A stretch of DNA of 64,000 bases from Macrostomum lignano (taxonomy: Eukaryota). A program made the translations under genes and the position numbers. Below the pieces are notes generated by a model, which was not told the origin of the DNA, did no database searches, and was given only the letters and a program-made list of their open reading frames with translations. How positions within the stretch are numbered: position 1 is the stretch's first letter; each line of letters opens with the position of its first letter. This document shows, one piece after another, positions 2,355-49,931 of the stretch. The DNA lies in the NCBI GenBank assembly GCA_002269645.1, contig NIVC01000269.1, forward strand, positions 186,001 through 250,000, written 5' to 3'.

Positions 2355-3782
2355 AAGTCAGCAGGCTAGCCCTAATTCTCACTGAAAATAGATTCACTGA
2401 AGAACCCTCTGTCACCAACGTCAAAGACATTCTCACTAATAGCGGCTTTAGGGTTGAATCGAACGTGCTGGGAAATTATGCTCAAGACATAATATCGTTC
2501 GTGCCTGATGAAATTTGTCGGTCGACAGTTCAGCAGTTGATCATTATTGTGATCGCCAACGCTCAATATCCGAAATGCATGGATGATTTCCTGAAACTGA
2601 TGACTGACGGTGGATTTTTCGACCTTCAAAAGCGCTTTCTCTTATTCTGCAGAGTTTCCAATGGTAATGAAAACACCAGCGACTTGCAGTTGCAGAGAAA
2701 ATTTTCTAGCAATAGTTTCAAGTACAAGAGCGCAATCGTTGGGTACAAGTTTGACGCCGAAGAGAAAATAAGAAACTTCATTAACTGGCTCGCTCAAGAA
2801 ATGAACACTTGCTGGAACAATAGCTGCCTATCAGCCATGCTTAGCAGATGGTTGCCAGCTCATGATGAAGAAGATTTGTACATGTATCCAACAGGAAAAT
2901 GCAAGCGACCTTTCCTACGGGACATTTTATTTCACCTTGATAATCGAGAGCAGCAAGAAGGTAACGGCCCGATGGCAGCTGGAGCCGAGGGCCCGATGGC
3001 AGCTGCAGCCGAGAGTCCGATGAATGCGACAGTCGACAACGACCAGATTGCTTCCCTGATTTACCCGAACAAGCGCACTCCCACCAAACCCCAAGCTCTG
3101 ATCATTCTCTATTTCAACAAGAGTGCAGCGCCGTGCGAGTCTCTCCAGGCCGACTGTTTGCGGCTGATGAAATTATTCAAGTTTCGCCTTGGCTACCTCG
3201 TGACAGATATTCAAGTTGATTCAGAGAGCCAGAACGATCTTGAGGACAGAGTGAAGAGCTTCGCAAACCAACAAGATCACGGTGACTCGTGCGTCCTCAT
3301 TATTTTGTCACTGTCGAACGGTCTGCTGTGTGGCCACTCCATCATCAATCTTTTTAGCCAGATGTCGCTCAGCAAGCAGCTAAAAGGCAAACCGAGGCTG
3401 TTTCTTTTGAATGAGTGGCAGAGTGGCGCACAGACTGGCCGACTTGCTGATCCAGCCAGTCCGAGCGAAGCATTTGAAATTTTGCCAGACACTGTCAGTT
3501 CAATGGAGGACTATTGGGGCACCAGAAATGAGACATCTAAAGTTCACCCCTTTAGTGGAATGGTATTCGGCCTTGCCTCAGCAAACAATGAGACAGATGT
3601 AGATGGGAGTGATTTTGTTAGAACGCTCTGCACGACCTTTGAGAAGTTCGGTAGCACTAAAGACGTAGTGTCCATGAGTGCCATAATTAATGAAGAACTG
3701 TCAGTTTCTGCTAAAGCGTTGCCTCGCTGGATTATTCAAACAACGAAACTTTTTTTCATCACAAATACAGGTGGACTGGAAA
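2355..3782 (+). CDS. Gene A exon: degenerate caspase-fold domain plus catalytically dead pseudo-caspase domain
   Basis: The reading frame is open upstream of the GTG at 2465 (VSRLALILTENRF...). Caspase motifs PQALIIL, HGDSCVLIILS-LS (His replaced by Leu, 3311), KGKPRLFLLNEWQ (Cys replaced by Trp, 3416), GSDFVRTLC. As an unspliced ORF it runs to the stop at 3838. Confidence 0.85.
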
Positions 3783-6700
3783 GTAAGTTTCCCAATCTTC
3801 TTATAACTTATTCTATTCCCTTGTACGAGCGTAGTTGAAGATTTAGTATATTGTGATTGTGCATTATTTGGTATAATTTACATTTACATTTCATTGCCTG
3901 TGTTTCTCACAAATTTGTCTTTCTTTATTAATTTCAACCTACAGCAACAAGTCAAAAAGTTTCACCTAATGGGCCTCAAGACAACGGTGAGAAAATTTAT
4001 ACTGACAGCATGAGCTACGTTCAGTTATGTACTAACTTGAAGAGTTGATATTTATAGATAACATTTGAAACTATTAAAAATTTCTAAGAAAACATTACAA
4101 ATGCATTTTCAGCTTGCACCAGTGAGAGAAACAAAGCTGGTAAGTTGGAACAATCTAGAATAATTACGAGTTCTTGACATTTGAATTGTATGTGGTTCGC
4201 GACTGCATGTTGCAGAAATTTTTCCGCCTTACTTAAAGGCGCACAACTCGCTCAGCAATCACACCACACATACAGGTGACTGCATGGCGATAGGGACAAG
4301 GGGAAGGAAAGGGAGAAGGGGAAGAGGGAGAGGAGAGGGAGTTGGTGAAACAACTTGAATACTTGTTTTAGTTAGCCGAGAATTCCTAAAGGGAAAGCGA
4401 TAGCGACGACAATTTATATATTTGATAAATCAATAGAAAAGGAATAAAACGTGAAAATGAAACTTTGCGTGTGTGTACAGTAATCAATGTACGCAAGGGA
4501 ATAAAAGACCGCGCACGACACAGGACAACCACCCCAAACCCACGCAAGCACAAACAAGACCGCGCTAGCTCACACCACCACTGTGGGGACGGAGGAAGTG
4601 AGAGGAGAGATCAGGGAGAAATAAGGTAAGGAGGAAGGAAAAACGGGACTCGCACTACTGATCAAGACCAGTCGAGTAGGGAGCATTCCGGACCAATGTC
4701 GCCCGACCCACACTACTCGTATGACTGGCATCCAGTTCCAGAGCTGAGCAGAGTCAGCCGCCTCCTGATTAGAGGGCTTTCACAGCTGACAGGAAAGCCG
4801 GAAGGAGAAGTGGGATTGGTTGGGGAAACAATGGAGATGGGACAAGGGATCGACAACGCTCACCCAACCGCCCAGACGGTCGAAGCAATCCAAACTGCCA
4901 CCACTTGTGGCGCTCCTAGTTGCCACCTTGGAACTTTAGAGAAACGAGTCCCCGAATTTCTACTTCCAACTTAGCCAATACAACACGCGTTCAGAGGGCT
5001 CCGTGCATTTCCGTTTTAGACTAAGTTTAGCTCAGAATGAAGTCACAATCAGATCGGGTTCACGGGATCACTCGATGTTCAAGCACGAGGTCTTTGCTCA
5101 AGCCGAACTGAGAGCTACACGTATCAACAATTGATTCTGACTAACCGACTGAGGACCCTAAAGCAGCCTGTTGTGAGGCAGATGAAGCTGATCCTCGTAA
5201 AAGCGTATTAGCTGACTCAGGAGCGAGAGCCCAAGCAGGCTGGCCGACACGCGAAGGGGAAGACGGGAAAATGAGCAATGAGCAGAAGCTCGGGTATTGA
5301 GCATTCGGGTAGCTAATAAGGGGAGATATGCAGGTCATACAGTAAAGACAACGAAGACAATATAGGAGGGAAGGCTCGAAGATAGCTGTGCACCATTTGA
5401 TAAATTTCAGGCTGTGGGTCATATATCGGTTAGAACAGAGGAACATCGGTTACAGACTCTATAAACTTGCAAAACTGCAATTAGCCTACCCAAACCTACA
5501 TGACTTGGGTAGAGGATCGGGAGCTACGAACGACTTCTGCTCCATCTATGAGGCTTTTCAAATAGTCGATTCTAGAACCAGAATCCGTTCTGAAATTCCA
5601 GGAAATGAAACAGTAAAATTCTCTAGCCCCTATAAACAAGAAAAGAACAGACAGTAGATAATTTGATTACATATGACAACTAACAAAATGATGGCAGAAA
5701 ATCAAACACTCAATATCATATTGTAGCGGCAGACGGGCTCGAAACAGACAGGGAGGCCATGTAGACAGACCGAACAGTGCATGCGTCTGCACGCTATCCC
5801 CCTGTTTGCTTTGCTGGGGTGGGCGCTCGCCCCAGACAGCTCCTGGTTTGTGACTCACGCCCCTTTGTTCGCACCTCCCCATGCTGGCTGTTCCCCTTTT
5901 ACAAATAAAACAAATAAAAGCGATGCACTTCTGCTTCGTCTGGTCTAACGCTTCTTGCAGACCACTAAAATATTATATACTCCAGGAAAGAAGTATAGAA
6001 GTATAGTTTTACTACTTGGATTCACAGATATTCAGAACCGATTTGGGTCCTGTAATTGGCAATTTGAAAAGCCTATTTAAACTTTTAAAAATGGGCAACG
6101 AATGAGAAATTACTGAGAAATTCTCCGACTCCAACTGACCGTCTATCACATCACTTTGCCGTCTATTGAGTGTACCTGAATCTAACGCATTGCAGCCTTC
6201 TTTGACGCTAGTAAAAAGTACTTAATACGAGTATGTTCTCTACAAAATTTCAGGTCGAACTGGTGTTGCCTTGATTTTCACAGAGTATTTATTCGATGCT
6301 GTCAGAAACTACCAAACGTTTCTTGAGTACGCAAGCTTTAAAGTACACGTGGACCGCACACGTGGTGACGTGGAATCGTTAAGAAAAGCGTTCGATTGTG
6401 AGAAAGACCATTTTCAAAAAGACCTCGTAGTTATTGTTGTCGTGCGCCAACGTCATAGCGATGGGGATCTGTGGCGAATAATCCGCGATATTGGTATCGC
6501 GAGATCGACAGAAGCTCGCCACAGCATACTGCTTATCTATTGCGAGGTCTATGACACCGAAGAATCTTCTCAGAGGGAGTTACAGGTAGCCCGGCAAGTA
6601 GAAAACTTGCCTGACAAGTTCAGCATGGCCTGTTTCTTTGGCAATGAAGAGGAAGTCAAAGAATTTCTTGACTCATTGCTCCAAGATGCGAGGATGTCAG

Positions 6701-7722
6701 AAAGCCTGAATGGAATTTCCGTTGTTGGCAGAAATTTTCAAGACGGGCGCACCTCTCAAAGAGAGAACTTCGTGTTCAAGCGTAATGATGAAATCCCAAA
6801 ATGGGCAACGGGAAGAGTGATTAAATGGCTAGGCAACTATACTATCAAATCAAGTGTTCAACGATCTACTACTGCGCAGGACGACACCGTTCAGTCAGAA
6901 GTTGTAGTTGATGAGTTCCGACTGTCCGAAACGCGGAAGAGATGGCACCCAAAGCTCCCCCCAGCAATCGAATCCACTTCAGAATGTGTCAGAGCACCCA
7001 GAGCACTCATCGTGCACAATGTTATCTTCAAAGAGAAACTAAGCGCTAGGCTCGGTAGCCAGCATGACTGTCAAAGGCTGACAGAGAGTCTCCTAAGACT
7101 CGGCTACAAGGTCTCGATCAGGTCGAATCTCAACGGAGCTGAAATTAAACACGAAGTTAAGAAGTTTTCCGAAGAGTCTGACGACGGCAGGTCATCTGTC
7201 GTTGCGTTTATGTCTCACGGACGCCTCGGCGAAGTCTTCGGCTCTGATGAAGAGCCTGTAGGAGAAAAAGATGTATTACAACTTTTCTCAGATGAATCAG
7301 GGACAAAAGACAACTTTCAGCTAGCCATATTTCAGTGCTGTCGTGTTCCAGGTCAATTACCAGACGAGGTGTCGTGTCTGGCCTTCTACCCGGGTATGAT
7401 AATCGCTCACTCTACCCTGCCAAATGACTTCAGTCTGCGTGTGAAGAGCAAGGGCAGCCGGTTCATCCAGAGCTTCTGCACAGTGCTGGATCTTTTTCCT
7501 CACAATGACATTGTAACGATCATTCCTCTGGTGAATTACTTAATGCTCAACTCGATTTATCAAGGATTCAGTCAGCAGCCTTGGTGGTTTGTTCAAAGCG
7601 GAAAAAGGTTCTGGCCCAAAGTTCAAGGTGCTGGTGAAAATTCACAAAATCCGTCAGAATGCAACAATGCTTTTGACTTACAGGAGTTACAAATAATTAT
7701 CGAATCAGATCACCAGGATTAG
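2355..7722 (+). CDS. Multi-caspase-domain protein A (degenerate fold - pseudo-caspase - degenerate fold - active caspase), about 980 aa plus unresolved first exon
   Basis: Predicted exons 2355-3782, 3945-3986, 6254-7722. All junctions are phase 1 and in frame: acceptor ttcag at 2354, donor A|GTAAGT at 3783, acceptor ctacag at 3944, donor G|GTGAGA at 3987, acceptor tttcag at 6253. Joined read: ...ITNTGGLE-TTSQKVSPNGPQDN-GRTGVALIFTE... Confidence 0.72.
6254..7722 (+). CDS. Gene A terminal exon: degenerate caspase-fold domain plus caspase (peptidase C14A) domain with intact dyad
   Basis: RALIVHN, ARLGSQHD, FMSHG (His 7216-7218), IFQCCRV (Cys 7339-7341), MIIAHST, SLRVKSKGSRFIQSFC. AATAAA at about 7926. 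Confidence 0.9.
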
Positions 7723-9431: not shown

Positions 9432-11965
9432 ATGACGAAAGACGCTTCAACTTTTATTGGTAAGGGGTTCGCTTTCTTCATAAATTTTCTATAGCTGACG
9501 AAAGATCTATAAAATACGTATACTTGAATAAACGTTTAAGCCGAAACTTTTAGAACGATCGTATGGCAACCGCCCAAAACGAGACAATTTTTTTAATTTT
9601 TACCCTTTCAGATCATCGCCGACTGCTGCTGGTCTTCGCTGATGAACACAAAGACATGCTGATAAATTATACCGAGTTTATGGAGAGTAAATGCGGATTT
9701 TTTAGGAAGACATTTCCCCTCGCAAACATTTCTGACGGCTTTGCTGAACTCGACAGCGGTCCAGTCATTCAAGTTGTCTGCGCCGTCGTCTGCTCGGAGA
9801 CATCCGCATGCAACATGGAAGACTTCCTGAAGCCTCTTATTGCTCGGTTTGGGAAAGATGTCGATCAGCTGCTGCTGTACTGCAGAGTCTGTGATGGCAA
9901 CCCAAATGAGAAGGATGAAGAATTAAAAAGTAAATTCAACGCCAGTGGATTCGAATACAAAAATTCGACAATTTCTTACATTGCTGACAGTTCTGACAAT
10001 ATTAGAAAGTTCCTAAGTGACAGCCTAATCAAACAGAAGACCAAGCAATGGAATGCCGAAACTTGTGCAGCTGATGTTCTTTACAACATTGAGGGTTTTG
10101 AAAAATTGTGCGTACAAAAGACAAAGAATTTTTTGCGACACATCTCGGAACCACATACGTCTGGGCAATCTGGCGCCATTTCATTCGCTGAGCCGTTTAC
10201 CAATCATATCAACACACAGATCACCGACAATTCGTTGATTTATCCTAATAGTCGTGAAACTTTTCCGAAGGCTCTTATCATTTTAAACATCTACCCAGAA
10301 AAGAATATCAGCAAAGCAATGCTCACGGACTGGAAGCGTCTGCTGTGGCTGTTCGACAAACTGCAGTTCAAAGTCACAGATGTGCAAACCGACGCCAGTA
10401 CTGAGAACGCAGCAGAAACCAGTGTGAAGAATTTTGCAAACTCTGAATACCATGGAGATTCGTGCGTCTTAGTGATTCTGTCTGAGTGCAAGTTCAGCCA
10501 AAACTTTATTCGCAAAACCAGCGACTCTATGGCAGCTGGCGAAAAACTCCAGGACAAGCCCAGACTGATCATCCTGCAGCACTGGGAGACCAAACCGCCA
10601 AGTGCCGATGGCGCGCCCGCTGGACTTTCCCAGTTCGTGCCGGCTATTGTTGACTCAATCCGGACCCGCCGCAAACACACAATGCCTGAAGTGCGAGTTC
10701 ATCCGCATGGCGGAATGATTTGGTGCCAGCCGGCTGCTGCAGACTCCGACACTGATGACGGCAGCTCACTTGTTTGGGCGATCTGCGACACCTTCATCAA
10801 ATATTCAGCCACTGAGGACGTGGTGTCAATGATTTCGCTGATCAATGAGAAGCTGAAGGCCTCGCCTCCACTGTGGTGTGTGCAGACTACCAAGTATTTC
10901 TTCATCACAGACACCAGTCGTCCATTGAATAACTCACGTGAGTACCTTTTTTGAGCTTATTCAAATTATACTTCGTATTATTATATTCCATAACTTATCT
11001 TTCGACTGTGAAATCGTTTTGTCGAATTGTGCAGTTGCTCTGTGATTCGGAATTACGTGCATTATTACTAACCAGAACAGGTAGAAAAGAGCAAATGTAT
11101 TCGTAATTACGTTAAATCAGCCAGCACAAAAAGGTAGCACAATAAGCTAATGAGGGTCAGTCGATGGAAAATCTTAAACACTATTTCAGTCTAAAAGCTG
11201 CCTCATTCCATCGATAAAATGTCTCTTAAAAAACCTTTTTCAGTCGAGCCACCTTCCACTAAAGAAAGCGCAAAAGCGGGTCTCGCCTTAATAATTAATA
11301 ATTACACATTTAAGAACGACTGTACTGGTAAATTTGTAAGAGAAGGAAGCGACATCGATCGTGAAAAATTGAAAAGTACTTTCAAAAAGTTTGGTTACGA
11401 CACTAAAATTGCGGAGGATCTCAGTGCAGAGAAAGTTCAATCTGAAGTGAAACAATTTGCCGATGATAGCCGTCACGGTGACACCTGCATTGTGGTCATC
11501 ATGTCCCACGGAAAACTGGGAAAAATCATTGGAGTTGATCACGCGGAAGCGTCGGAAACGAAAATCCTAAAAATACTGAACGATAGCAAAAGCCTTTCAG
11601 GAAAGAAAAAACTCGTCATATTTCAGCTATGCCGAGATCACCCAGATGGAAGCCCATCGAGCAATTCTGCAGACCATCCCACTCGACTGGTCTACCCGGA
11701 CATGATCGTGGCGCACTCGACAAGCATAGGTGAAAAAAGCTTTCGCAGCACAGATCAAGGCAGCCGGTTTGTGAATAGCCTGTGCGATGCTCTTGACAAG
11801 TTCGGGAAAGGCTCAGACATCGTCTCGCTCATCAGTGCCATCAACTGCATTATGATGAGAAGTTTTTACGATGAAACTAGTACAATTAAAGATGACACCC
11901 AGCTGCCCTTCTGGCTGGTGCAGACCACGGGCCCTTTTGTTCTCGCCAATCTTACGGATGGCTGA
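9432..11965 (+). CDS. Multi-caspase-domain protein B (degenerate fold - pseudo-caspase - active caspase), 691 aa
   Basis: Predicted exons 9432-9459 (MTKDASTFI, donor G|GTAAGG), 9612-10937 (acceptor ccctttcag, donor C|GTGAGT) and 11244-11965 (acceptor cctttttcag). Both introns are phase 1. Total 2076 nt = 691 aa + stop. Confidence 0.75.
9612..10937 (+). CDS. Gene B exon: degenerate caspase-fold domain plus pseudo-caspase domain (paralog of 2355-3782)
   Basis: SLIYPN, PKALIIL, HGDSCVLVILS-EC (His replaced by Glu, 10484), KPRLIILQHWE (Cys replaced by Trp, 10583), RVHPHGGM, WCVQTTKYFFIT. Alignable by eye along its length to the gene A exon. Confidence 0.85.
11244..11965 (+). CDS. Gene B terminal exon: caspase domain with intact dyad (also readable as a 248-aa ORF from ATG 11219)
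   Basis: GLALIINN, VREGSDID, IMSHG (His 11507-11509), IFQLCRD (Cys 11630-11632), DMIVAHST, SFRSTDQGSRFVNSLC. Confidence 0.92.
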
Positions 11966-14431: not shown

Positions 14432-15010
14432 AGGTAGGTAGGTAGGTAGGTAGGTAGGTAGGTAGGTAGGTAGGTAGGTAAGTAGGTAGGTAGGTAGGTA
14501 GCAGGGGCGTAGCCAGGAAATTTGATTGGGGGGGCCGTGAGTTAGGGGGCGCCAGCTTCTTATAGGGGGGCGCCAGTTTCTTTTAGGGGGGGGGGGGCGC
14601 CAGTTTCTTATAGGGGGGGGGGCGCCAGTTGCTTTTAGGGGGGGGGCAGTTTCTTATAGGGGGGCGCCAGTTTCTTTTAGGGGGGGGGGGCGCCAGTTTC
14701 TTATAGGGGGCGCCAGTTTCTTATAGGGGGCGCCAGTTTCTTTTAGGGGGGGGCGCCAGTTTCTTTTAGAGGGGGGGCGCCAGTTTCTTTAAGGGGGGGG
14801 GGGCGCCAGTTTCTTTTAGGGGGGGGGCGCCAGTTTCTTTTAGGGGGGGCGCCAGTTTCTTTTAGGGGGGGGGCGCCAGTTTCTTTTAAGGGGGGGCGCC
14901 AAGGCCAGAGTTGGTGATTGGGGGGGGGGCCACGGCCCCCCTTGCTCCCCCTCTGGCTACGCCCCTGGTAGGTAGGTAGGTAGGTAGGTAGGTAGGTAGT
15001 TAGGTAGGTA
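14432..15010. repeat. (TAGG)n microsatellite interrupted by a MITE
   Basis: TAGG runs at about 14432-14501 and 14968-15010. Confidence 0.9.
14502..14967. mobile_element. hAT-like MITE with an internal G-rich minisatellite
   Basis: Perfect 15-bp TIR CAGGGGCGTAGCCAG (14502-14516) / CTGGCTACGCCCCTG (14953-14967). GTAGGTAG flanks both sides, consistent with an 8-bp TSD. Internal GnCGCCAGTTTCTT(T/A)TAG repeats. Confidence 0.8.
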
Positions 15011-15399
15011 CATAGATTTTATTTTTAGTATGGTTGGATTTTTAGTATATCTGACTAGCCATTTAGCCTTTCTCCGGGTGGCTTCTTAGCAGTTTTGCGC
15101 TTGTCTATAAGCAGTTTTGTACAGTCGCTGAGCAAATGCCACTAATCTGAAAGCAGTTTTGCAGTAGCAAATATCTCAGCAGTTTCAGACCGAATTATAC
15201 TGAGTTACATTTCTTAATGTTTGTAACTTTGCGATGTCAGTTAATTAAAAGGTCTCTTACGGCTCGTATAGTTATTCTATATTTTTTGTCTAAGTTAGTC
15301 TTGTTTTCACAATATTAAATTTCGCACTAGTTGCACGATAAACCTGACATGAGGATTACCATCAGAGTTGCTCTACTCTCCCCAGTTTGGCACCACTCC

Positions 15400-16620
15400 C
15401 ACCCTGATAAGCACACCACTCCCACCTTGATTAGCACCACTCCCATCTGATTAGCACTCTCCTCACAGATTAGCACTGCTCCCACCGGGATTAATATCCA
15501 CTCCCTCAGATTACCCCCACTCCATACATTAGCACCAATCCTCCAGATTAACACTACTCCCCATATTAGCCCCAATTCTCCTATATTTGTCCCACTGTTA
15601 GATTAGCCCCACTCCTTCAGATTTGCACTACTTCCATCAGATTAGCACCAGATTATCACCACTCCTCCAGATTAGCCTCCCTCCCCAGATTAGCACTGCT
15701 CCCCAGATCAGCACCGCTCCACAGATTAGCACCGCTCCTCAGATTAGCACCGTTCCTAAGATCAGCACCGCTCCCCAGATTAGCACCGCTCACCAGATTA
15801 GCACCGTTCCTAAGATCAGCACCGCTCCCCAGATTAGCACCGCTACCCAGATTAGCACCGCTCCTCAGATTAGCACTGCTCACCAGATTAGCACCGCTCA
15901 CCAGATTAGCACCGCTCACCAGATTAGCACCGCTCCTAAGATCAGCACCGCTCCCCAGATTAGCACCGCTCCCCAGATTAGCACCGCTCCTTAGATTAGC
16001 ACCGCTCACCAGATTAGCACCGCTCCCCAGATTAGCACCGCTCCTCAGATTAGCACCGCTCACCAGATTAGCACCGCTCCTCAGATTAGCACCGTTCCTA
16101 AGATCAGCACCGCTCCCCAGATTAGCACCGCTCACCAGATTAGCACCGTTCCTAAGATCAGCACCGCTCCCCAGATTAGCACCGCTCACCAGATTAGCAC
16201 CGCTCCTTAGATTAGCACCGCTCACCAGATTAGCACCGCTCACCAGATTAGCACCGCTCCCCAGATTAGCACCGCTCCTCAGATTAGCACCGCTCACCAG
16301 ATTAGCACCGCTCACCAGATTTGCACCGCTCCTAAGATCAACACCGCTCCCCAGATTAGCACCGCTCCTAAGATCAACACCGCTCCCCAGATTAGCACCG
16401 CTCCTAAGATCAACACCGCTCCCCAGATTAGCACCGCTCACCAGATTAGCACCGCTCACCAGATTAGCACCGCTCACCAGATCAGCACCGTTCCCAAGAT
16501 TAGCACCGCTCCTCAGATTAGCACTATTTCCCCCCAGATTAGCACCACTACCCCAGATTAGTCCCACTCTTCCAGATTAGTCCCACTCTTCCAGATTAGT
16601 CCCACTCTTCCAGATTAGTA
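15400..16620. repeat. 18-bp minisatellite (CCAGATTAGCACCGCTCC) with degenerate flanks
   Basis: Dozens of directly visible units; they explain the STAPQI and SGANL ORFs. Confidence 0.95.
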
Positions 16621-20417: not shown

Positions 20418-23400
20418 TCAATGCTCGTTTAAATCGCCCAGTAGCTGGCCAACATCCTCTCGGACGCCATCCTTGATGTCCTTGGCGGCATCGAGACCCC
20501 GACGAACCGCGGCCGAGGCCGACTCTCTGAGATCGTCGCCGCTGTCGTCTTCTCCGCCGGATGAGGAGCCGAAAAATCGAATCAGAAGGCGGTTCACCTG
20601 ATCCGGGGCGTCCTGCTGCACCCAGTGGCTGGCCTGGGGCACCAGCTGGAACTCCATCTGACTGCAGTACTTGCCTGCATGTTATGGGAGTGGCGATTGA
20701 TCGAAGCTATTCAAAAAGATACCAACTTGGGAAGCGCACTAGTTGGGAACCCGGCGATTTAGAAACCCTTCGATTTAGAAACCTACTATTAAGAAACCCT
20801 ACTAAAAAATTTAGGAAATCTACCATTTAGAAACCATGAGACATGACTTATATGTTACTCGTAGGTACCCTACTATTAGGTAGGAACCCTACCGTACTAT
20901 ATAAGAACCACAAAGTTTAGGAACCCTATCATTCAGGAACCATACAATTTAGGAACCCTACAATTTAGGAACCCTACAATTTAGGAACCCTACCATTCAG
21001 GAACCCTACCATTCAGGAACCCTACCATTCAGGAACCCTACCATTCAGGAACCCTACCATTCAGGAACCCTACCATTCAGGAACCCTACCATTCAGGAAC
21101 CCTACCATTCAGGAACCCTACCATTCAGGAACCCTACCATTCAGGAACCCTACCATTCAGGAACCCTACCATTCAGGAACCCTACCATTCAGGAACCCTA
21201 CCATTCAGGAACCCTACCATTCAGGAACCCTACCATTCAGGAACCCTACAATTTAGGAACCCTACAATTTAGGAACCCTACCATTCAGGAACAATACAAG
21301 ATTGGAAACTAGAAAAACCGTAACAGAGTTAAAGGACATACGGGCACTGCAATAAGCAACTGTCTTTATTCGAAACTCACCAGACAATTTAGCCGCTTCC
21401 TGCGTGATGTACTTATCGTTGGCGCCAAACACCAGCATGGTTGGCACTGTAAGCTGCTTCCTGCTGCCGCCTTCGGCGCCCCGGCTAGGATAGCGGAACG
21501 CGGCCCGGTAAAAGTTAATGGGCCCAGTTAGAGCCGTAGCCGACGAGAAGGTGTACTTGAAAGCGTCCAATTCCTGTTGGTTAACAACGCCTTTCAAAGC
21601 GATGTCCATCGAGACGAGATCTTGACGAGTAATGAGCCATTCCGGAAAGCAAGGCAGCTGGAAGAAGAACATGTACCAAGACTTGAGGAACTGGGTCAGA
21701 TTCGAGCGAATGTAGGTCTGGAATGCCACGGGATGTGGGCAGTTGAGTACGGCCAGTTTGGTGACCATGCCCGGGTGAGCCATGGCGAACGACCAGACAA
21801 CTGCGCCGCCCCAGTCGTGACCAGCCAAGTAGCACTTGTCGTAGCCTGGTGTTGGTGAAATAATTTTTGTTCTTATCTAGTTTACGATTACTCAATCATA
21901 ACTCTTATAATTACTGCATTACTGCCCATTCCGCCGACTCCCCGAAGCAGGCACACAAGCACGCGGATACGTACGCAGTCATACGCGCAGGCACACACTC
22001 ACACAGGAGTGTACAGCGGCCCTAACTTTATTTATCGTTAGGCATGTACACTTCACTGTGCCCTTAAGGGCGTTAACTCCACGAGCAGAGCCAAGCCGAG
22101 ATTCCAATTTAGCCCCAAAATTAATGCAACTACACTTGGAATCGAGCCTGGGCCGCTGGTCCATAAGTGCGCCAGGATAAACCACTAGTCCTCTCCCAAA
22201 TCATCACAACTATGATTGTAAAACTCAACAGCCTATCAGTAAATCACAGCCTTTGTTCAAAGTGAAATATTAAGCTACAGGAAACGCAAATCTTACCCAA
22301 AGAGTTAATAGCCTGTCGGATATCTTCAACCAGTTTTTCAATTCGATAATTCTCAACGCCGCGCGGCTTGTCGCTGTCGCCGTAGCCGCGCATGTCTATG
22401 GCCACAATCCTGTGGGCGAGGCGAGAATTAACAAGATTAAGATCTGGGCACTACCATTTCGCTCACCCCTGAGCACACACACGCTCACATAGGGTGTGCG
22501 CTACTTAGTACTCTTAGTAAACTACTGTTAGTAGCTCGTAATGTGCTGCAGATGCAGGTTTATTTTAATTGATTTAAAATTTCACTAACCTGTAATTCTT
22601 AGCCAGATCGCTGTCAAGCTGATGGCGCCAGCTGAACCAAAACTCTGGGAAGCCGTGCACCAGCAGTAGGAGGGGTTTCCGGGGATCGCCATTCTCAATG
22701 CAGTGCAGAGTGATGTCCTGTTAAGTAAAGTTAAACAAATACATGCAAGTGGAGCAGGTTAAGACATTAAAACATTACAACAAAGCAGTTTCATTAGCCA
22801 TTACGGGGACACTATTTTCATGTTGAGTGGTTCCCAGCAAATCAGTGTCAAGTAGCGCCAAGGGCCAAGGCGATACTGTAAGGTGGCGCCAAGGCTATGA
22901 TATGGGATGGCGCCAAGGCTATTATGTAAGGTGGCGCCAAGGCTATGATGTAAGGTGGCGCCAAGGCTATACTGTAAGGTGGCGCCAAGGCTATACTGTA
23001 AGGTGGCGCTAAATACTTTCGCTAGCCAATTCTGCGGGTGAAGATTCAAAGTCGCTTTTTTTCAAAAAGCTCGATGTTCACGAGCAGAATGCATGACTGC
23101 ACTTGGAGGGGCTTGTGTTGTTTTGCGTGATAGAATTGCATCAACGAGTGTCCACTTTTGACTTTATCATATTATCTTAACTCACCAATCGACTGAAACA
23201 GTCTAGTCAAAGTCCGACTGTAATAAAACTTCACTTAGTAAACAAACTTTGAACGCGACGCTCAAGTGACGCCCATGTCTCAGTGTGCAGTGTTTAGTTA
23301 ATCAAAATAAAAGTCCCAGCTGATAAGGCGGGGTCAGCTTTTAATCAGTCAACAGTGGCACTTGTTTTGCGAGTGAATCAAGTCAAACCCAGTCAGCTCA

Positions 23401-30155: not shown

Positions 30156-33100
30156 ATGGATTACTTAGAGGCGCTTCTGTCAAAAAAGTTAAAAAACTTA
30201 TCTAATCTGATCAAGACCGACGGTATTAGCCAAGTGAATCAGGCGCGGTACCAAGGCAACGGCCTTGTTCACGTGGCTGCCGCCAGCTCCGACCTGGAAC
30301 TGACGCGGCTTGCCATCCAGGCCGGGCTGGACCTGGAAGTGCGAAACGACGAGGACATGACGGCTGTTCACGTCGCGGTTGCTAGCGGCAATGCCGAAGT
30401 ACTGAAGCTGCTGCTGCTGGCCGCAGCGGACCCGAACGCTGTCTACGGCAGAACCGGCTGGGGTCCCCTGCACCTAGCAGTTCGATCCGCCTCGACTGCC
30501 GCCTCCGTACAACTGGAGATGCTGCGCCTGCTGACGAAGAGCGGCGCCGATGCCAGTCTGACAGATGCGGACGGCAACACGCCGCTGCACCTGGCGGTGG
30601 AGGCCAACGCCGACAAGCGAGTCGTTGCTCAACTAGCTGACGCAATGGAGAATCGAGTCTCAATGAGAAACCTTCGCAGCCTGACGCCACTGGAATATGC
30701 AGCCATGAACGGCAATCGAAAAGCGATTCAGCAGCTGGTGAAGCGAGGCGCAGTGCCGCAGATTCGACTGCTGAACCGGTTTGGCTATATTGCCTACGTT
30801 GAGGTGTTTCTGGAGATCACCATCAACAAGTTGAGCACTGACTCTGTGGCCACTCTGCTCAGGCACCCGGATTTTCAGGCGCTGATTAACTACATTGTCT
30901 CCTACAAGATCAATGAACCCAATCGGCGCGATGCTCAGAGTGGTCAGTCAACAATTCTGAGCGATTTGGTTAATTCTCGGTACAACGGTTTGGGCACCTT
31001 CAAGAGCCTGCTATTGAACAATATCAATACAAGATTCGCAAATCACCTATCTGACAATGCCAAGGCTAGAGCAGCCTGGGCTGACCTGGTTATAACCTAC
31101 GTCCTATTTAGAGAATCCGTATCCCTGATAAGGATGCTAATTGAGGACAAGCTTCTGTTCTTTCTAACTGACGCTGCAATCCAAGGCCAGCTGCACAATC
31201 TGTACAAAGGCAAGTTCAATCGCTACCTACCAAGCTCTTTGTCTCAGAGCTTCGTAGCGGACGATGGAGCTAGTAGGCAGCAGATTGAGCAGATGCTGCG
31301 TCGTTGGCTAAAAAGCAAATCCGGTATCTGTTTGATGAAATTCGGTTTCCCTAGCGAGGAAGCAGTCTCTATTGGTATTAGGCAGGTGTTTCGAGCGCCA
31401 GCCTTTAGCTTGATGACCTGGGCGACTGCGTCCGGTCGCTATCACCTGTTGCCCTATCTTTTCATAGCCGAAGACACGGACAATATACCTCTCGGACTGT
31501 TCAGCATGGCGCTGCTCAATCGTCTTATGCAGGCGCGCAGCTCTGTCGGCACTCTATTCAGCCAGGATGCGGAGTACTATCGATTAGAGCTCGAAGTTCT
31601 CATACACTATCTCATATCCCGGATGTGGCACTTAGACAAGTCGCACGAGAAGTCCAACTCGGCGCTGTTCCAACTGCAACAGCTGCCCGTGTATGGCGGG
31701 GCCAGCATGCTAGACATGACTATGCAAGTTCGATCGTTGAAACTGCTCCAGTTTTCTAGCACTATCAGCGCTATGAGCCTACTGTGGTATCGCGGCCTGT
31801 CTTGGATGTCAAGCTCTCACCGGTTCCTGTTTATGGCTTCATCATTAGGCCTCTGGTTTGTGCTGCTGATTCCGGTAATTGTGCCGACGCTGGAACGGCT
31901 GATTCCAGCGCGGTCGCCCGGCTTACAGTTCCTTAGAGTCGGCCTCCTGCTGTGTCTGGCGTTCATCAATCTTCTGATCGGGCTGGGCCTAGCTGGGCGC
32001 TACACCCTTCAAAGAATTGAGAAATTTCGACGAAAAGCATCAGCAGCCGAGAAGGAGCAACGACAAAAATTTGGCAGCCTCCTGCTCACTGGAGCGCCCG
32101 GCCAACGATGGCAGTTTGACGTCATGGTCGGGGACGCGCCGACGTCGAGCGCCGACTCCGTGCTGGAGTTTCTACGCACCCCAGCAGTGAAATACCTGGC
32201 CTTCTTGCTCACGTACTTAGCCTATGCGCTATTAGGTTTATGGATTGGCACGCGAAGCTTCCGGTACATCATTTCCGACGCAGAAATCGTCTATTGGATC
32301 TTCTTCTTCGGTTTCCTATTGGAGAACGGGCAGCAGTTTGTCCGCACAAAATTATTTGGCAGTTGTTTCTATCGGCAGTCAATCTTCTGGGCCATAGTGT
32401 CGGTGCTTACCTACCTGTTCGGCTTGACAGCGTTCATCTGGCGAATGGTTTACCACACTGCTCACCAATTCGAAAACAGGACTGCGACTTCGTTTGAAGC
32501 GCGCGAAGTTGCCGACTCAACTTTCCTGGGCGTTCGCTATCTATTCGTGCTGTCCCATTCGCTAATGTTTATGCAACTCTGGCGATTCTTGTCCTCGAGG
32601 CCGTGCATCGGGCTGCTAATCCGCATGATTGAAAAACTGATTAGATACTACTTGTGCCAGTTTGTGCTGCTCATGCTGCTGGTCATGATTCGAGGAGCGT
32701 TTATCTTTGGCAGTATTTTGTATCCGCAGGTTAGTACTCTCGCAGCTACCCTTGAAAAAGTTGATTTTCAAGTAGACAGGCCAGTGAGACGATGCATCGA
32801 ACAGAATTAATAAGTTTCCTTGTGCACTGAAATGGATTCTTCAGTATGCAGTGATGCACTCATTTGCTAGCACGAATTTAAACTTGAAGTTTGAAAATTT
32901 AAATTGCGTATCAAGCAGGATAAAACTCGTAATTCTTGTGTGCAAATAAATGAAAGCAAAATTTGAAAAAAAACCTTTTCAGGGCTACGCAATGCACGCC
33001 AATAATGGCACGGTCACCCAGATGTCCACTCCGATCTACTTTCTAAGAGTGTTCGTGCACTCGTACTACTCAATAATGGGTGAATTCCTGTCAGACTATC

Positions 33101-33597
33101 TGAGTGGATTCGAATGCCAAGGCGACTCGATCTGTCCGGCAACTTACCTGGGCAGCTTTTTGGTTACAGTATTTCACATGTCCGGATACGCCTTCTACAC
33201 CACTCTGCTGCTGCTTGGACTTCTCATCTCCTTGGTTACCATCATTGTTGACGAGCTCAACCGGAATCACATCGCTCACTGGCAGATTGCTCGGTACAAC
33301 TTTGTGCAAGAGTTGAACTACTATTCTCTGCTTTATCCACCATTCAATGTGCTGCACATCTTAATTGAATGGATCGCCATGGCGAACGACTGGAAAGCCG
33401 TAGCTCAACTGTACGACCTCGGCCAGGGTTTCTACAGCCAGTCCAGCCTGATCAACAACCTGCTCAGTCAGGCGTATGTTTTGGAGCGAGATCGAGATCG
33501 AATGCTAGCCGAGATCGAGCAACGGCGAGAGCACCGGAACAAAACCAAGATTGATACTGGAAACAGTGGACTGCATCGTTGGCGTTGCTGCTTCTAG
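30156..33597 (+). CDS. Ankyrin-repeat TRP-family cation channel with TRPM-like linker and transmembrane region, 1062 aa
   Basis: Exons 30156-32729 (donor CAG|GTTAGT) and 32983-33597 (acceptor ccttttcag), phase 0. About 5 ankyrin repeats (MTAVHVAV, WGPLHLAV, GNTPLHLAV, LTPLEYAA). Six TM-like segments, pore SYYSIMGE, TRP helix WQIARY..QE....LYPPF. Confidence 0.85.
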
Positions 33598-35571: not shown

Positions 35572-38500
35572 TCAGACAGATCCTTCAGGATAGATAATCC
35601 GAGGTGCCAGGCAGCTCCTGTCAGTTGGCTGTGGCGACGCGGGCATGGCCAAACTGCTGCCGCCTCCGCTGCTGCCAACCCCGCCGAGCTCGATGGATTC
35701 TGGCAGCGCGGACATCGGGCTGGGGAGCCCAATGCCTTGGCCGAGAAATGATGATTGCTGCAGCTGTTGATGCTGTTGCAGCTGTTGCTGGTGCAGATGA
35801 TGATGCTGATGGTGCAGCAGCGGATGCAAGGCTTGCAGGTTGGACTGTCGAGACATGGAAGCGGCTGCAGCCGCCGCGGTGGAGGGGCAGAGAGCGCACG
35901 AGAGGTCCTCGTCTGAGCAGCCGCGTCCGCTGTCCGATCGATTGCCGTCGGCGCCGGGTCCAGCTGTGGCCGCGGCGGCACCGGACGAGGCCGAGGATCC
36001 GGTGGCGGTGCCCGAGGAGGCTGGGATCGCCTGGCGGTGCCTGTACAGACTGGCCATGTCTTGGACGATGAACGGCCTGCCGCCGCACTGGAAGGTTCAA
36101 CGGATGATGACGATGCTTGGAATGAATTGAACTTGGAATTGTGGCGTCACTCATTTATAACAAACGTAATCTCTTTTCAAAGCTGAATATCAAATTACTT
36201 TACACAAACTGATAACATGCTACTGATAGCGACTGCAGAACCATGGGTTGTACTTTTTTAGTCATAAAATCCCGTGTCGATTAACCTAACTAGCAGTTAG
36301 GAGTTAGGAGTAGGTTTGGCAGTTTGGAAATGAAGACAATATTTCATTTTTTTGGATTCCTGTTGTGCAGAATTCTAAACTTCAAATCGTCCTCGTGCAT
36401 CGTATTTGCGATGAAGACTCACCCCCATAGTACTGCACAGGTGAGAATGATGCGAGCCAACATCGCAACTGGCCTCTGTCAGCGGCGTCTCCTGCTCGTA
36501 ATACCGTTGGTCCTCATCATCCGCGCCTTTGTTTCGGCCTCCAATGCTTGCGACGCCGCCGACACCCCTGCCGCCGTCCCGGCCACCTCTGCCGGCCCGG
36601 TAGGCGAGATCAAACAGGCCACCAGTGCACGACCGATTTATGCAAGCGACGGCTAAGATCAAAGCGACCGCCAATAGGGCCGATACTGAGGCCAGCGTGA
36701 TTATAATGACGACGTTGCGTCGAGTGTGTCGCTCTGTCAGACTTGCCGCAGTCTCATCCGACGCGATTGGCAAAGAGTTGTCGACATCGATGTAGATCAC
36801 CTGTTGAGAAATTAATTATAGACAAGAATTATAGACAAGCTATCTTCGCACGTTTTGTACTAGTTAGCAGACCATGCAAAATCGTCAGAAGTTTGGTATT
36901 AAGCAACTTTATTTGCGTTGATGAAGTTATAGTGACCTATTTAGAGTTAGAGTCAGGGGGCTGTGTCCACATTGGTGCACTTAAACCGACATTGTCGGTT
37001 TGCAGTCACCCAGGTCCCTCTCCCTGGGTGACTGCAATGGTAAAATGTCTATGGTCAAATCCTTCCATAGAGATACAGGATATTCTATAAAATATGGAAA
37101 CATTCTAGTACGAGCGTATGGCTTAGCTCCAATTCACTATCTTAAATACGAAATCCAGAGACAAGCTTATGAATCCAAGGTGTAAAATAGACGCTCTTTC
37201 TTATCATTGGCTACTGCTAGCAACAACGCCCCTTTCCCTAAACCCCTAGGAATATAGAAAATCTGGAAATCTCTGGATACTATTTTTTCTAGAACATACA
37301 CACGAGCTCGGGACACTCTAGTGCAATGACTTCGACAACATCGTCCCACAACCAGCGCTGACTCCTGAGCACATACAAGCGCGCCAATAATGTTTGCAGG
37401 CACGATTTTCTAATCGTCAGGCATGTAAACTCGCTGCACGACACACCCCACGGCCAATTCAATGCAAAAAAATTGAACCCGCGGTCGAGAGTCAGACGTT
37501 TTAACCTTTAATGTTGTCTGTTGTCTCTCCTATTCCTGCTTATTTTAATGCTCAATAGCTCACCCTGATATCGCTCCAGTTGTGTCGTCCGCCGCCAACC
37601 ACTTTGGCTATGATGGTATGCCTTCTCAGGTCCACAATGCCCAGCTCCCCGGCTACCCGAATGTCTCCGCTGCTCGAATCGATGCTGAACCTGGGCGGAA
37701 ACGTCTCCGGCGCGATCAACTTGTACACCATGCGAGCATTCGCGCCGACATCCGGGTCAAAGGCGCGCACTCGAATTACTAGCGCATTCTTCGGATGCGT
37801 GTAGATGCTGATGCGCACCGAGGTGCCATTTTCGGCTGGCAAAGAAATCCTTGGCGGCTCGTCGTCCTCGTCAATGATCATCACGACGACTTCCGCGTCA
37901 GTGTGTCGGGCCAGGCCGCCGGGTCCTTGGTCGGTGGCGCGGACGCGAAGCCGATGCTCGGGGCACTCCTCGCGATCGAAGCTCACTAGGGTGTAGAGAG
38001 ATCCGTCCTGGTCCAAGCGAAAGCTGGACGCTGTGGGACTCGACAGTAGAGTGAAGATCACTCGAGCGTTTTCACCTGTGTTTTTGGCAGGTTGAGAATA
38101 ATGATTCTGATATATTGGTAAGAACTGTCTGTACTCTTTGACATCTGATACGCATATTTTACTGCATGCGCTAATTCGAACAATGTAATCCTACACTACA
38201 GGACAATACTTGAAGTCTACCTAACAGTCTTACGTGCTGAAATCAAATTGTGGAACTAGTTGAGACTAAAATCTATAAGCTCACATGAATATCATGTGAT
38301 CGTTTCTGTTTGTCCCCTTTGAGACAAACTAATCGAAGGATGAAGGAATAATAAAGATATGTTGACAGTTTAGTGTTGTAACAGATTTTTTGCTTGACAT
38401 GCGAAAACTTCAGAAAAATTTCAGATTTGTCCACCAAGAGACAGGGACATCCACCAAGAGACAGGGACGCTAGATTTGTCCAACAGGAGACAGGGACACC

Positions 38501-41500
38501 CACCAAGAGACAGGGATGCCCACTAAGAGACAGGGACACCCACCAAGAGACAAGATACTAAATGTTGGTGTTCCTTAGGGTTGCAACCCCTCCAATTCCA
38601 ATTCCTTAGGTAGGCGGTCTTCAGTCTTGAAGTTAAACCCTGATAAAGCACAAAGGTTCATAATTGTTTTTGCGACTTTGTTAATTTTCGCTCCCTAAAA
38701 AGACTTTAAAAATGAGTAGGCTCATGCAAGCTACTAAGTTGAAAGTAGAGTGAAGGAGCTTTGCTATCCGAACACGAATGAACAATAATGAATAGCGTTA
38801 GAATATTTTGTGCCGAACTCATCGTCCCCAGCTCTCAGCCGTATTTTCCCACCATAGAAAGTTTAGAATAGTGCAGCTGAAACTCACCCAAATCAGCGTC
38901 TCTAACCGTCAATTGGCCCAGCTGTATCAACGCTTCGCTATTCTCTACAATAGAAAAGTGTCGAGCTCCGTAAAACTCCGGCGCATGATCGTTAGTGTCC
39001 AGTATCGACACCTTCACTGTGGCGGTCGTCGACATTGCCGGATTTCCGGCGTCAGCCGCCTCAACCAGAAGCTCGTATTTGTCGACGGACTCTCTATCCA
39101 GCAGGCTGGTGGTGGTCAAGCGGCCTGACGTCGGGTCCACCGCGAATGACACCTCCGAGGAGCTGCTAATTAGGCGATAGGTAATCCGGGCGTTCTCTCC
39201 TTCGTCTGCGTCCGTCGCCCATACATTGACGACTTCAACGCCTGGTCGACGATTTTCTTCCACTTGAGCAGCGATGCAACCGTAGCGATCCGCGTCTTTG
39301 AATACGGGAGCATTGTCGTTGATGTCTGTCACCTGAACGAGCGCCGTGTAGGTGCTTGTCAGGCTCGGATCTCCGGCGTCCCAGCAGGTCAGAGTACCGG
39401 TGACTCTCGGCTCGACCTCTCGGTCTATGGCTCTTTGAATCGCAATTTTGTAAACACCTGAAAATTCTACACTAGTAAATTGCAGAGCTGCTTGCTCTGA
39501 GTTGGCCGCACCGCGACAGGTCCACTGACCTCCGGGGCCAGTGTCTGGGTCCGACACGGAGACGAATCTCGGCGAAGCATCCCCGGGCAGTTCGTTCTCA
39601 GTTACGTAAAACGGCTTCGTGTCCGACTCTCGGTACCGGGGCGGGTTGTCGTTGCGGTCCAGCACTCTCAGGTGCACGGGCGCCGTGTCGTCAAAGTTAC
39701 CGTCGAATACGCGAACGGAGAACCGAAGTTCGGTTATTTTCTCATAGTCAAGAGGCTCCTCGGTCGTCAGCAGGCTGCCGTCGTCAGTTACGCGCAGGTG
39801 GCGACGTACATCCTCGGATGCTTCGGTCGGATCGAGACTGTAGCTGAGATTGTAGTGCAGGTCAAGATCGTCGGCTGTGAGCTGCGGATATTCATAAGCA
39901 AAGTTTTCTATTGGATTTTCTCGTATGTTTAGAAACGAAAAAGGCATTGTTGCGACACACCCACTCTCGGCCTAATCATATGCAGAAACGGCAATGTTAA
40001 AGACTGCAATAATTTCATAAATTAATTTAGTCCGGTGCGCTATAGATCATACTGGCTAGCGGGGAAGCTGATAGCCATAAGCCTTTGCTAAGCTAACCAA
40101 CTCCCAATGATTGATCGATGATAACTGAGGATTTAGCTACCTGGCTCTCATTGTTTGCGATATATCTCATTCCTATCTATCCAAATTGCCAATTATCGCT
40201 TCGCCAGATATTCCGTTCTGTTCCCCAATACAAGTCTTCATCTCTTTTCGTCTCTCCTCATCTCAAAAACTGCTGCGTGTAGAATCTATTTTTTAGTGGC
40301 GGTGAGACAGAGAGCTATTGGACTAGCTCTTCGCAATTATGTTTTCCGTGCCTGATTGGCTGACTCGCGAAATTATATTATTATATTAGACTAGAGGAAG
40401 GACGTGGCAGAAGAGGCTAGTTGATAAAAAAACTTAACTACTATATAAGGCGACTTATGGTGGCCGGTCTTACTGATGATTTTTTGACTTCCACATATGA
40501 GACCAGCTTGGGCTAGCCGACACGCGAGCAAGCCTCAGAGCCCAGAGCCCAAATGGCACGACGAAGGAAGGAAAGGGCCGGACTGAGAGAGATTTTAGAA
40601 GTTTGCGAGACGTGAATTCCGACTGGTATAACCCACCCCCGCTCCCTGCCGCCGGCTAGCTGAGGGCAAGCACTGGACTGAGTTGGACCAACTGACTGGC
40701 TGATGATGTAGAACGCGTCGCGGAGGCTGGGATTGCTCCATCTCGCCTGTCTAACGGTAGAAAAATATAACTTTAACCGGCCTGCCTTCCACTGGGGCCT
40801 ACCAAACTGTAGTTCACCTGACCCCCTTACTCCCCAACCCACCTACGCCTCGCTCCCAGCAGTGGAGCGCCATTGTGGAAACTGTCTCGGTAGCTTCTGT
40901 CAAAACCGCCCCCGGCCCTCATCGTCCTGCCCACCTCACCTGCATTTCCAACTGGCTGCAGAGAGGGGTGCAGCGGGGAGTAAAGGACTTCTAGGCGGCT
41001 ACTGGTGGGAAACAACGCTGAAAAAATAATAATTTTGCCAAGCCGGGGATGAGAAGCGCGCCCAACCAAGGCCTCTCCGGCTGCAAGTTGTACGTGTTTG
41101 GCGACTGCAGCTTTTTTGGAGGAGGCCAGCCTTGTTTATAGCTACCTACCTTTAGCGGTGTGGCATAACGCCGCCCTGAGCTGCTGCTCTATTTGGTATT
41201 CAGGACGGGAGAAAATGGAGAGATGAAAGAGGTAAGGCAGAAAAGGTACGCGACTATTCAGCAAGGAATCATCTCTCACATGCGGGGGTGACACTATGGA
41301 ATGGAGATGTAGGAAGAATCGGTACTGAGGAATCTGTGCTAGTCAAACTACTGGCATGGTAAACCGCGCCATACGCCGCCGGGGTTCGCTTCTCGCTCGT
41401 TTTCATTCACGTCAAAACAGCCTCAAGGGCGAACGGATGATTGATGAGCTGTCGGCATCAGCTCTCATTCTAGTTGGGACTGAATTGTGTGTCGGAATGA

Positions 41501-43948: not shown

Positions 43949-44010
43949 TTGGCTTCTTTCTTCTTTGAGCTGCAATTTGACGTTGTCGAGGGGATAGGGT
44001 TGCGTCAGAA

Positions 44011-44440
44011 TGATGTAACACTTAGACCTGCAGGATGTGTCTGATGCGCCTAAATGATGATACACTTAGACCTGCATGATGTGTCTGATGCGCCTAAATG
44101 ATGATACACTTAGACCTGCATGATGTGTCTGATGCGCCTAAATGATGATACACTTGGACCTGCATGATGTGTCTGATGTGCCTAAATGATGATACACTTG
44201 GACCTGCATGATGTGTCTGATGCGCCTAAATGATGATACACTTGGACCTGCATGATGTGTCTGATGCGCCTAAATGATGATACACTTGGACCTGCATGAT
44301 GTGTCTGATGCGCCTAAATGATGATACACTTAGACCTGCATGATGTGTCTGATGCGCCTAAGTGATGATACACTTAGACCTGCTTGATGTGTCTGATGCG
44401 CCTAAATGATGATACACTTAGACCTGTATAATGTCTGATG
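44011..44440. repeat. 44-bp tandem repeat (ACACTTAGACCTGCATGATGTGTCTGATGCGCCTAAATGATGAT), about 9 copies
   Basis: Period 44 (copies at 44018, 44062, 44106...). It lies just upstream of the protocadherin ATG. Confidence 0.95.
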
Positions 44441-47047: not shown

Positions 47048-47962
<915 letters not shown>

Positions 47963-48369
47963 CGCGTCCTGATGCACTCAGTTGATATCCCCAGAAGCCA
48001 GAAGTCCCAAATATTTACCGCATTTAATGCCGGGCAGCCGCCATTTCCATCATCAAAGTGGCATCAAATTTCCGCAGCAGCGTTGGCTATGCTGGTTTTT
48101 CTTCCACGGTTTCTGTTGAGCCCACACTGTAGTGGCCATAAAACAGCCAGCGGATGCTCATATTTCATACGGCGTTTGAAATTGAAATTACACAAAATTA
48201 TTATAGACCTGCGATGCTCAAATTTTAGAGAGTACGAGCTAGAAAGCGAGTAAAAAGTAGAGAAAATCGCAATGAGATTTTTTTATCCATCATAAGGCAA
48301 AAAGTTAATGAATCTTAGTGATGCAGTTAGAAATTTGGTTCATAAGATAAGAGATAGTAGAGAGAAAAT

Positions 48370-49470: not shown

Positions 49471-49928
<458 letters not shown>

Positions 49929-49931
49929 TCT

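Follow-up and report, generated by a model that had tools for sequence, protein, structure and literature searches.

In the flatworm Macrostomum lignano, a 64,000-nucleotide stretch of nuclear DNA from contig NIVC01000269.1 (GenBank assembly GCA_002269645.1, positions 186,001 to 250,000 of the forward strand; hereafter the window, numbered from its first letter) encodes proteins of the caspase family in which caspase domains (C) are preceded by a further type of domain, here termed N. Mapping of database proteins onto the window yields two genes: gene A, with the order N1-C1(pseudo)-N2-C2(active), as mapped with the proteins P0005 (PAA73902.1) and P0004, and gene B, with the order N3-C3(pseudo)-C4(active), as mapped with P0001 (hypothetical protein BOX15_Mlig018970g1, 691 aa). 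With a chance barely better than even, N is a Macrostomum-restricted, degenerate and catalytically dead caspase-like domain, in which a retained Cys is a relic and which would act, without catalysis of its own, as a scaffold or partner. Caspase ancestry is the best-supported reading of N and is favoured over the others considered below, yet it is unproven. Either way, the N-domain family is an undescribed one, whichever its origin.

An earlier note on this DNA, made from the letters alone, had pointed to three related segments at 2357-2870, 6256-6700 and 9614-10100. Their relatedness is confirmed by BLASTP (N1 against N3, E 2e-15; N1 against N2, E 0.002; N3 against N2, E 0.02) and by a joint N profile that retrieves every paralog copy with E-values of 1e-7 to 1e-81. 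All motifs quoted in the note for the three segments were found in place (in N1, RLALILTE at 2363-2386, KRFLLFCRV at 2630-2656, SAIVGY at 2729-2746 and IRNFINWL at 2768-2791), as were the helix ends SGF, ASF and CGF and the Cys codons TGC at 2648, 6541 and 9881. The domains run some 15-20 residues past the ends given in the note and reach approximately 2887, 6738 and 10123, which adds a helix and a short sixth strand. On the forward strand, N1 comprises 2357-2887, ending according to the AlphaFold models 17 nt beyond the earlier limit, with the codon of Cys98 (FLLFCRV) at 2648-2650; N2, a divergent “type 2” copy, comprises 6256-6738 (Cys codon 6541-6543), and N3 comprises 9614-10123 (Cys codon 9881-9883).

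A profile of five N segments, run exhaustively against 1.84 billion representative proteins, produced six matches at E ≤ 0.001, all of which are M. lignano caspase-family proteins. Within the family, the architectures N-C (P0007), N-Cpseudo-C and N-Cpseudo-N-C occur. By these sequence comparisons, N is a real, lineage-restricted domain family that is without a Pfam model. Only F31, L95 and L112 are invariant in the alignment of the seven N-domains of the family, and the number of invariant polar residues is zero, which suits a scaffold better than an enzyme. A word-indexed homolog search with N1 alone as the query returned no match; the same search with C4 returned two M. lignano fragments only, and a deep caspase alignment was therefore not buildable.

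The evidence for caspase ancestry comes from profile-profile comparison and from structure prediction. In an hhalign comparison that had been planned beforehand, the seven N-domains were set against the seven caspase and pseudo-caspase domains of the same proteins. This gave a score of 37.8 (P 6.1e-5, probability 65%) over a region running from β2 (the GF-x-V strand) via β3 and α3 to β4. In this alignment, a gap of two residues (LLLY--CR against LxIFQxCR) precedes the N Cys, which then falls on the catalytic Cys, and the catalytic His is matched by Asn68 of N1. For the β1-β4 half of N against the p20 half, the probability was 84% (P 7.5e-6), and against the active domains only, the score was 34.5 over 98 columns from β1 to β4. 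These values are to be seen against nulls of 12-15 for reversed profiles, 11.8 ± 2.1 for column shuffles, and 16.1 ± 2.6 (maximum 24.0) and 15.4 ± 2.3 (maximum 24.7) for eight-column block shuffles of either partner; with three realignment methods, scores of 27-40 were obtained over the same region.

For N1, an AlphaFold2 model of the 172-aa core was calculated from the seven-sequence alignment (predicted local distance difference test, pLDDT, 80.8; predicted template modelling score, pTM, 0.82). It describes a (βα)5 arrangement with β1 at 2-9, β2 at 31-37, β3 at 58-68, β4 at 92-100, β5 at 126-133 and helices in between, and matches the β-α order that had been deduced from the letters. Past the end of the earlier segment, the N-domains continue with a conserved amphipathic helix and then a short hydrophobic stretch (LYMY, LCVQ, LYIK, LSLY; in type 2, ISVVGRNF). 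An extended N1 model of 218 aa (pLDDT 76.1) retains the core and adds two helices (135-152 and 158-168) and a strand at 174-177 (LYMY). The resulting order β5-α4-α5-β6 is the C-terminal order found in caspases, the fold of which is a six-stranded sheet of the order 2-1-3-4-5-6, with β6 antiparallel and two helices between β5 and β6.

A Foldseek search of the PDB with the extended model has MALT1 paracaspase in all of its first ten places (E 1e-4 to 8e-4; query template modelling (TM) score, TMq, 0.44-0.53), and flavodoxins fall to E ≥ 4e-3. In 7xn4, the CopC-CaM-caspase-3 complex, one chain of 169 residues, which we infer to be caspase-3, reaches a target TM-score (TMt) of 0.61. The uncleaved single chain of MALT1 may explain its rank above the classical caspases, most of which are split into p20 and p10 in the PDB. 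The earlier note had held that a flavodoxin-like fold would speak against a caspase origin; the 172-aa core alone is indeed flavodoxin-like, while the extended model matches MALT1. In appearance, a flavodoxin-like core is a caspase fold minus its last strand, and the (βα)5 order does not discriminate between the two.

The strongest rival explanation regards N as an unrelated, lineage-specific flavodoxin-like (βα)5 domain that was fused to the caspases as a novel prodomain (e.g., for oligomerisation or ligand sensing), and its p20 likeness as generic to three-layer α/β sandwiches; we consider this a serious possibility, although one that falls clearly short of even. Several results favour it and weigh against caspase ancestry. 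With the 172-aa core, the Foldseek search against the PDB is led by flavodoxins, including fusions of G-protein-coupled receptors with flavodoxin (E 2.5e-5 to 1e-3, TM 0.41-0.51), and its top 50 contains no caspase. The Pfam family PF00656 (Peptidase_C14) matches none of the seven N-domains at E ≤ 10, and hmmsearch --max, run with the N profile against caspase sequences and in reverse, finds nothing over shuffled decoys; the caspase signal of N is confined to the profile-profile level. Even there it is fragile, with scores dropping to 18 (type 1 only), 20.9 (type 2 only) and 24.3 (pseudo-caspases only) once the profiles are thinned. The C-terminal half of N scores 9.3 against the p10 half, where shuffles give 10.2 ± 1.5. 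A further point against caspase ancestry is that N remains at noise against human caspase-3 and caspase-7, with scores of 14-16, in comparison to 175 for the family’s own caspase domains against the same two sequences. TM-scores of the N1 models are modest throughout (about 0.4-0.6), and the sixth strand of N1 (174-177) is of moderate confidence (pLDDT about 67) and is read as order along the chain. In PDB searches with sub-profiles, the caspases vanish, and T4 lysozyme and Nup155 appear as noise at equal E-values. Finally, the partner or scaffold role of N is inferred throughout.

A flavodoxin-like origin, on its part, has to account for the behaviour of N in the same comparisons. Under hhalign, N stays at noise against seven Escherichia coli receiver domains (NC_000913.3; scores 12-13) and against FldA (score 9), whereas against the family’s caspase domains it lies well above every null. 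Pfam gives no match of N to these families, and a conserved functional motif of flavodoxins, CheY or TIR domains, such as the flavin mononucleotide (FMN) loop or the phospho-acceptor Asp, is not seen in it. Completion of the model at its C-terminus shifts the best match from flavodoxins to paracaspase, and in four of the seven N-domains the Cys after β4 is followed by Arg, as in the QxCR of the family’s active domains. Taken by sequence, N resembles the caspase domains of its own lineage, as an internal duplicate would, and this resemblance is thin.

Caspase ancestry of N, which we continue to prefer, was the central proposal of the earlier note, and it stands in part: it is backed by the profile-profile signal over β2-β4 and by the MALT1 matches, and it is opposed by the flavodoxin-like core and by the missing Pfam and p10 signals. 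The further correspondence drawn between SAIVGY with its following helix (IRNFINWL) and the DMLVAYST region of the p10 half has no statistical support (score 9.3). At low stringency, hhalign does align these motifs colinearly with their caspase counterparts, and the match is a positional one. The count of four caspase folds in A and three in B holds as far as the module architecture N1-C1-N2-C2 and N3-C3-C4 is concerned, and in part only as regards the caspase origin of N.

Searches of other collections added candidates that were set aside. Matches of the N-domains to Pfam, NCBIfam and PADLOC models were scattered and attributable to chance (DUF7909 at E 0.15, Peptidase_M9_N, SIS, acylphosphatase and Csm2), and a match of the PDB profile search to a designed Rossmann 2x3 protein (E 1e-4) was put down to generic, idealised β-α repeats. 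With the seven-sequence N profile, the best natural matches in the PDB are Spodoptera and Drosophila caspases, which align in the same register at E 0.075-1; since they are lost with sub-profiles and noise occurs at equal E-values, they are not counted as standalone evidence.

A different question is whether N has kept a caspase-like chemistry, with its Cys as a nucleophile, a redox sensor or a covalent trap, the latter two of which had been proposed before; we hold this to be very unlikely. The idea draws on the Cys being present in six of the seven N-domains of the family, including all three copies of the window, and on its alignment with the catalytic Cys. The retention claimed earlier is correct for the three window segments; it does not extend family-wide, given that the second N-domain of P0004 has Phe at this position (LLIYFEIL). 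Of the QACxG context, Gln-Ala is missing, corresponding to the two-residue gap in hhalign, and the Gly is absent as well. As had been stated, the catalytic His is lacking from all three segments, the aligned position being occupied by Asn in N1 (according to hhalign) and by Arg in N2 and a Ser/Glu-type residue in N3 (according to the N-domain alignment). The β1-α1 loop of N, where the P1-binding Arg of caspases sits, is approximately 12 residues shorter, and of the residues forming the P1-Asp pocket (an Arg within the β1-α1 loop, a Gln preceding the Cys and an Arg that follows β5), none is conserved in the N alignments. In addition, the Cys lies two residues inside the predicted hydrophobic strand β4 (FLLFCRV, strand 92-100), and the lack of invariant polar residues also counts against an enzyme. 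Because of the Phe in one domain, the location within hydrophobic β4, and the absence of the His and of the Asp-pocket residues, the Cys has probably persisted as a buried remnant of the catalytic one, either tolerated or structurally useful; the proposal of a redox or covalent-trap site is not sustained.

Least likely of all, and rejected, is the identification of N with a TIR domain acting as a signalling adaptor or an NADase: the (βα)5 fold is found in such domains too, the Foldseek search with the core model lists flax L6 TIR in 46th place (E 4.9e-3, TMq 0.40), and UniRef names P0002 (A0A1I8GM93), a fragment of a gene A paralog, “TIR domain-containing protein”, presumably after a PROSITE profile, but Pfam TIR families match neither the N-domains nor P0002 even at E ≤ 10, the bacterial TIR models of PADLOC and NCBIfam are not among the matches listed, hhalign against three TIR sequences (indicative only) scores 11-13 and thus at noise, no TIR is contained in the Foldseek top 50 of the extended model, and box 1, the RDxxPG BB-loop, the box 3 motifs and the conserved Glu are all absent from the N alignment.

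If the caspase reading of N is followed, N would most likely have arisen by duplication of a caspase domain within the lineage and would subsequently have shed the His and the QAC context, together with the L1 loop that bears the Arg and the long linker between the subunits, in place of which there is a short helix. N opens an exon-delimited N+caspase module, at the place where CARD or DED prodomains stand in other caspases, and this module would have been duplicated (one in P0007, two in gene A) and would partly have decayed. In the present proteins, N may support the adjoining caspase or pseudo-caspase domain as a scaffold or built-in partner that lacks catalysis, much as FLIP(L) pairs with caspase-8 or as the pseudo-protease domain of separase supports the active one. 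Folding, pairing of a dimer-like kind or activation would then be under the control of N, and death-fold adaptors would not be required.

Carried further, up to four caspase-derived folds per chain (eroded N, pseudo-caspase, eroded N′ and active caspase) might assemble within the molecule into a pseudo-oligomer resembling a caspase dimer or tetramer. We regard this extension as improbable; if true, it would represent an adaptor-independent, self-contained switch of activation or latency in place of CARD- or DED-driven proximity, and N would be the most degenerate caspase fold recognised so far, forming a new Macrostomum-specific domain family. Caspase-derived pseudo-enzymes are rare. If N is caspase-derived, one gene family would display serial duplication with stepwise decay, from active domains to pseudo-caspases that have lost both catalytic residues, and on to eroded domains in which only the Cys is left, and it would offer a model of how caspases can be regulated in the absence of death-fold adaptors. 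Should N be flavodoxin-like instead, it would still be an undescribed, lineage-restricted caspase prodomain.

The genes themselves are organised in long exons on the forward strand, four of which contain a Pfam PF00656 match (C1, C2, C3 and C4). In gene A, the exon with N1 and the pseudo-caspase C1 extends over 2355-3782; the acceptor cag ends at 2354, the donor gt follows at 3783, introns on both sides are in phase 1, and P0005 maps to 2801-3784 with 99.7% identity. C1 lies at 3095-3742 (PF00656 E 1.5e-10, open reading frame (ORF) 2357-3838) and has lost the His (LSLSN-G) as well as the Cys (NEWQS). The last exon of gene A (6254-7722; acceptor cag ending at 6253; P0005 mapping to 6250-7719 with 97% identity) carries N2 and the active caspase C2 at 7000-7593, with SHG and QCCRV (PF00656 E 1.5e-29, ORF 6256-7722). 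All four parts, N-Cpseudo-N-C, are present in P0004, a gene A paralog of 1017 aa.

In gene B, N3 and the pseudo-caspase C3 share the exon 9612-10937, for which the acceptor ends at 9611, the donor gt follows at 10938, and phase-1 introns are again found on both sides; P0001 maps to it with 99% identity, as seen in ORF 9563-10954. C3 occupies 10268-10897 (PF00656 E 1.8e-6, the same ORF), with LSECK replacing SHG and QHWET replacing QACR. The last exon, 11244-11965, encodes the active caspase C4 with SHG and QLCRD (acceptor ending at 11243; PF00656 E 4.9e-37, ORF 11219-11965), and P0001 maps to 11240-11962 with 99.6% identity.

In the alignment of the family’s caspase domains, C2 and C4 retain SHG and QxCR, while in C1 and C3, which PF00656 still matches, neither the catalytic His nor the catalytic Cys is left; because of this double loss, C1 and C3 are classed, on their sequences, as pseudo-caspases. 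Each of the two proteins accordingly pairs a dead with a live caspase domain in cis. Phase-1 introns at 2354/2355, 3782/3783, 6253/6254, 9611/9612, 10937/10938 and 11243/11244 bound the module exons; N1, N2 and N3 each start 1-3 codons past a phase-1 splice acceptor, and C4 likewise starts a few codons past its acceptor. The exons combining N and C are symmetric (phase 1-1), which fits duplication or shuffling of modules without a break of the reading frame.

The deposited model of gene A, P0005, opens inside N1, at an internal Met (MNTCWNN...), and leaves out N1 (window 2357-2800). N1 is in frame within P0005’s own exon, behind a good acceptor, and an N-domain is present in the paralog P0004; for these reasons the gene A annotation is probably truncated at its start.

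A 13-kb stretch of the window has a 99% identical counterpart in GenBank contig NIVC01000988.1. Relative to this contig, N1, C1 and N3 are unchanged and C2 has one change, while within N2 ten substitutions are gathered in 181 bp (6370-6550), ten of them nonsynonymous and none synonymous (V39M, E40K, C48R, Q65H, W73L, R77G, A82T, I91T, Y95H and Y99H). The proportion of 0/10 synonymous changes is not significant alone (P about 0.09), and the pattern possibly reflects a tract of gene conversion, a cluster of mutations, or selection that is either relaxed or positive; for an informative ratio of nonsynonymous to synonymous rates (dN/dS) between the window and this contig, the substitutions are too few. 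In N3, the stretch EKLCVQKTKNFL (10103-10123; LCVQKTKNF), which corresponds to the predicted sixth strand, resembles β6 of C3 (LWCVQTTKYFF, 10870-10900). The other N-domains are without such a stretch, and the resemblance may be a coincidence, at most a lead.

Elsewhere in the window, coding-looking ORFs are found at 30156-33597 (+), 37552-44065 (-) and 21262-21828 (-). By eye, one long ORF among these looks rich in ankyrin repeats with multi-pass hydrophobic segments (TRP-channel-like?), several look cadherin-repeat-like, and one looks like an α/β-hydrolase fragment. Long micro- and minisatellite arrays extend over 14545-16618, 47050-49944, 56616-59064, 60605-61875 and 62505-63206, with units comprising an 18-bp repeat (65 copies), a TGTC/GTCT-type 12-bp repeat (76 copies) together with GTCT (118 copies), 23-bp repeats (40 and 58 copies) and an AG-rich repeat of 19 bp (67 copies). 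These satellite arrays are the cause of the extreme GC and AT skew and of long repetitive pseudo-ORFs.

Among known systems, flavodoxins, CheY receivers and TIR domains share with the β1-β5 core of N the (βα)5 order; N differs from them in that profile similarity and cofactor or phospho-acceptor motifs are missing and in that two helices and a strand follow β5. To the extended N1 model, no structure is closer than MALT1 (7pav, 4i1p, 3v55), a caspase-hemoglobinase fold on a single uncleaved chain, as N would be. However, both catalytic residues, His and Cys, are present in MALT1, C14 profiles match it, and the likeness of N1 to it amounts to a TM-score of about 0.5, E of about 1e-4 and 10-15% identity. 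In separase, degenerate and active clan-CD domains are arranged in tandem on one chain, the dead one supporting the live one; separase belongs to an unrelated family of other size and context and is likened to the M. lignano caspases by description only.

Closer in lineage, a survey of lophotrochozoan caspases reports for M. lignano only a kinase-like unusual prodomain (PMC11463336). Bivalve caspases with two CASc domains, as described in Mytilus coruscus, are a parallel in that the caspase domain of a lophotrochozoan protein has been duplicated in a lineage-specific manner; there, in contrast, both copies are recognisable CASc domains, and a cryptic, profile-invisible prodomain copy is not described (PMC10967218). 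Pseudo-caspases are known from FLIP(L), which is reported to be the sole one in humans (PMC7586951). It forms a polypeptide of its own, carries DED prodomains and is readily recognised by caspase profiles, whereas N is situated in cis, comprises approximately 180 residues, is invisible to Pfam, has kept the Cys and lost the His, and has a helix at the site of the intersubunit linker. The likeness lies in FLIP(L) being a catalytically inactive caspase-fold domain whose working partner, caspase-8, is an active paralog; C1 and C3 are clear analogues in this respect, and N is a more eroded candidate.

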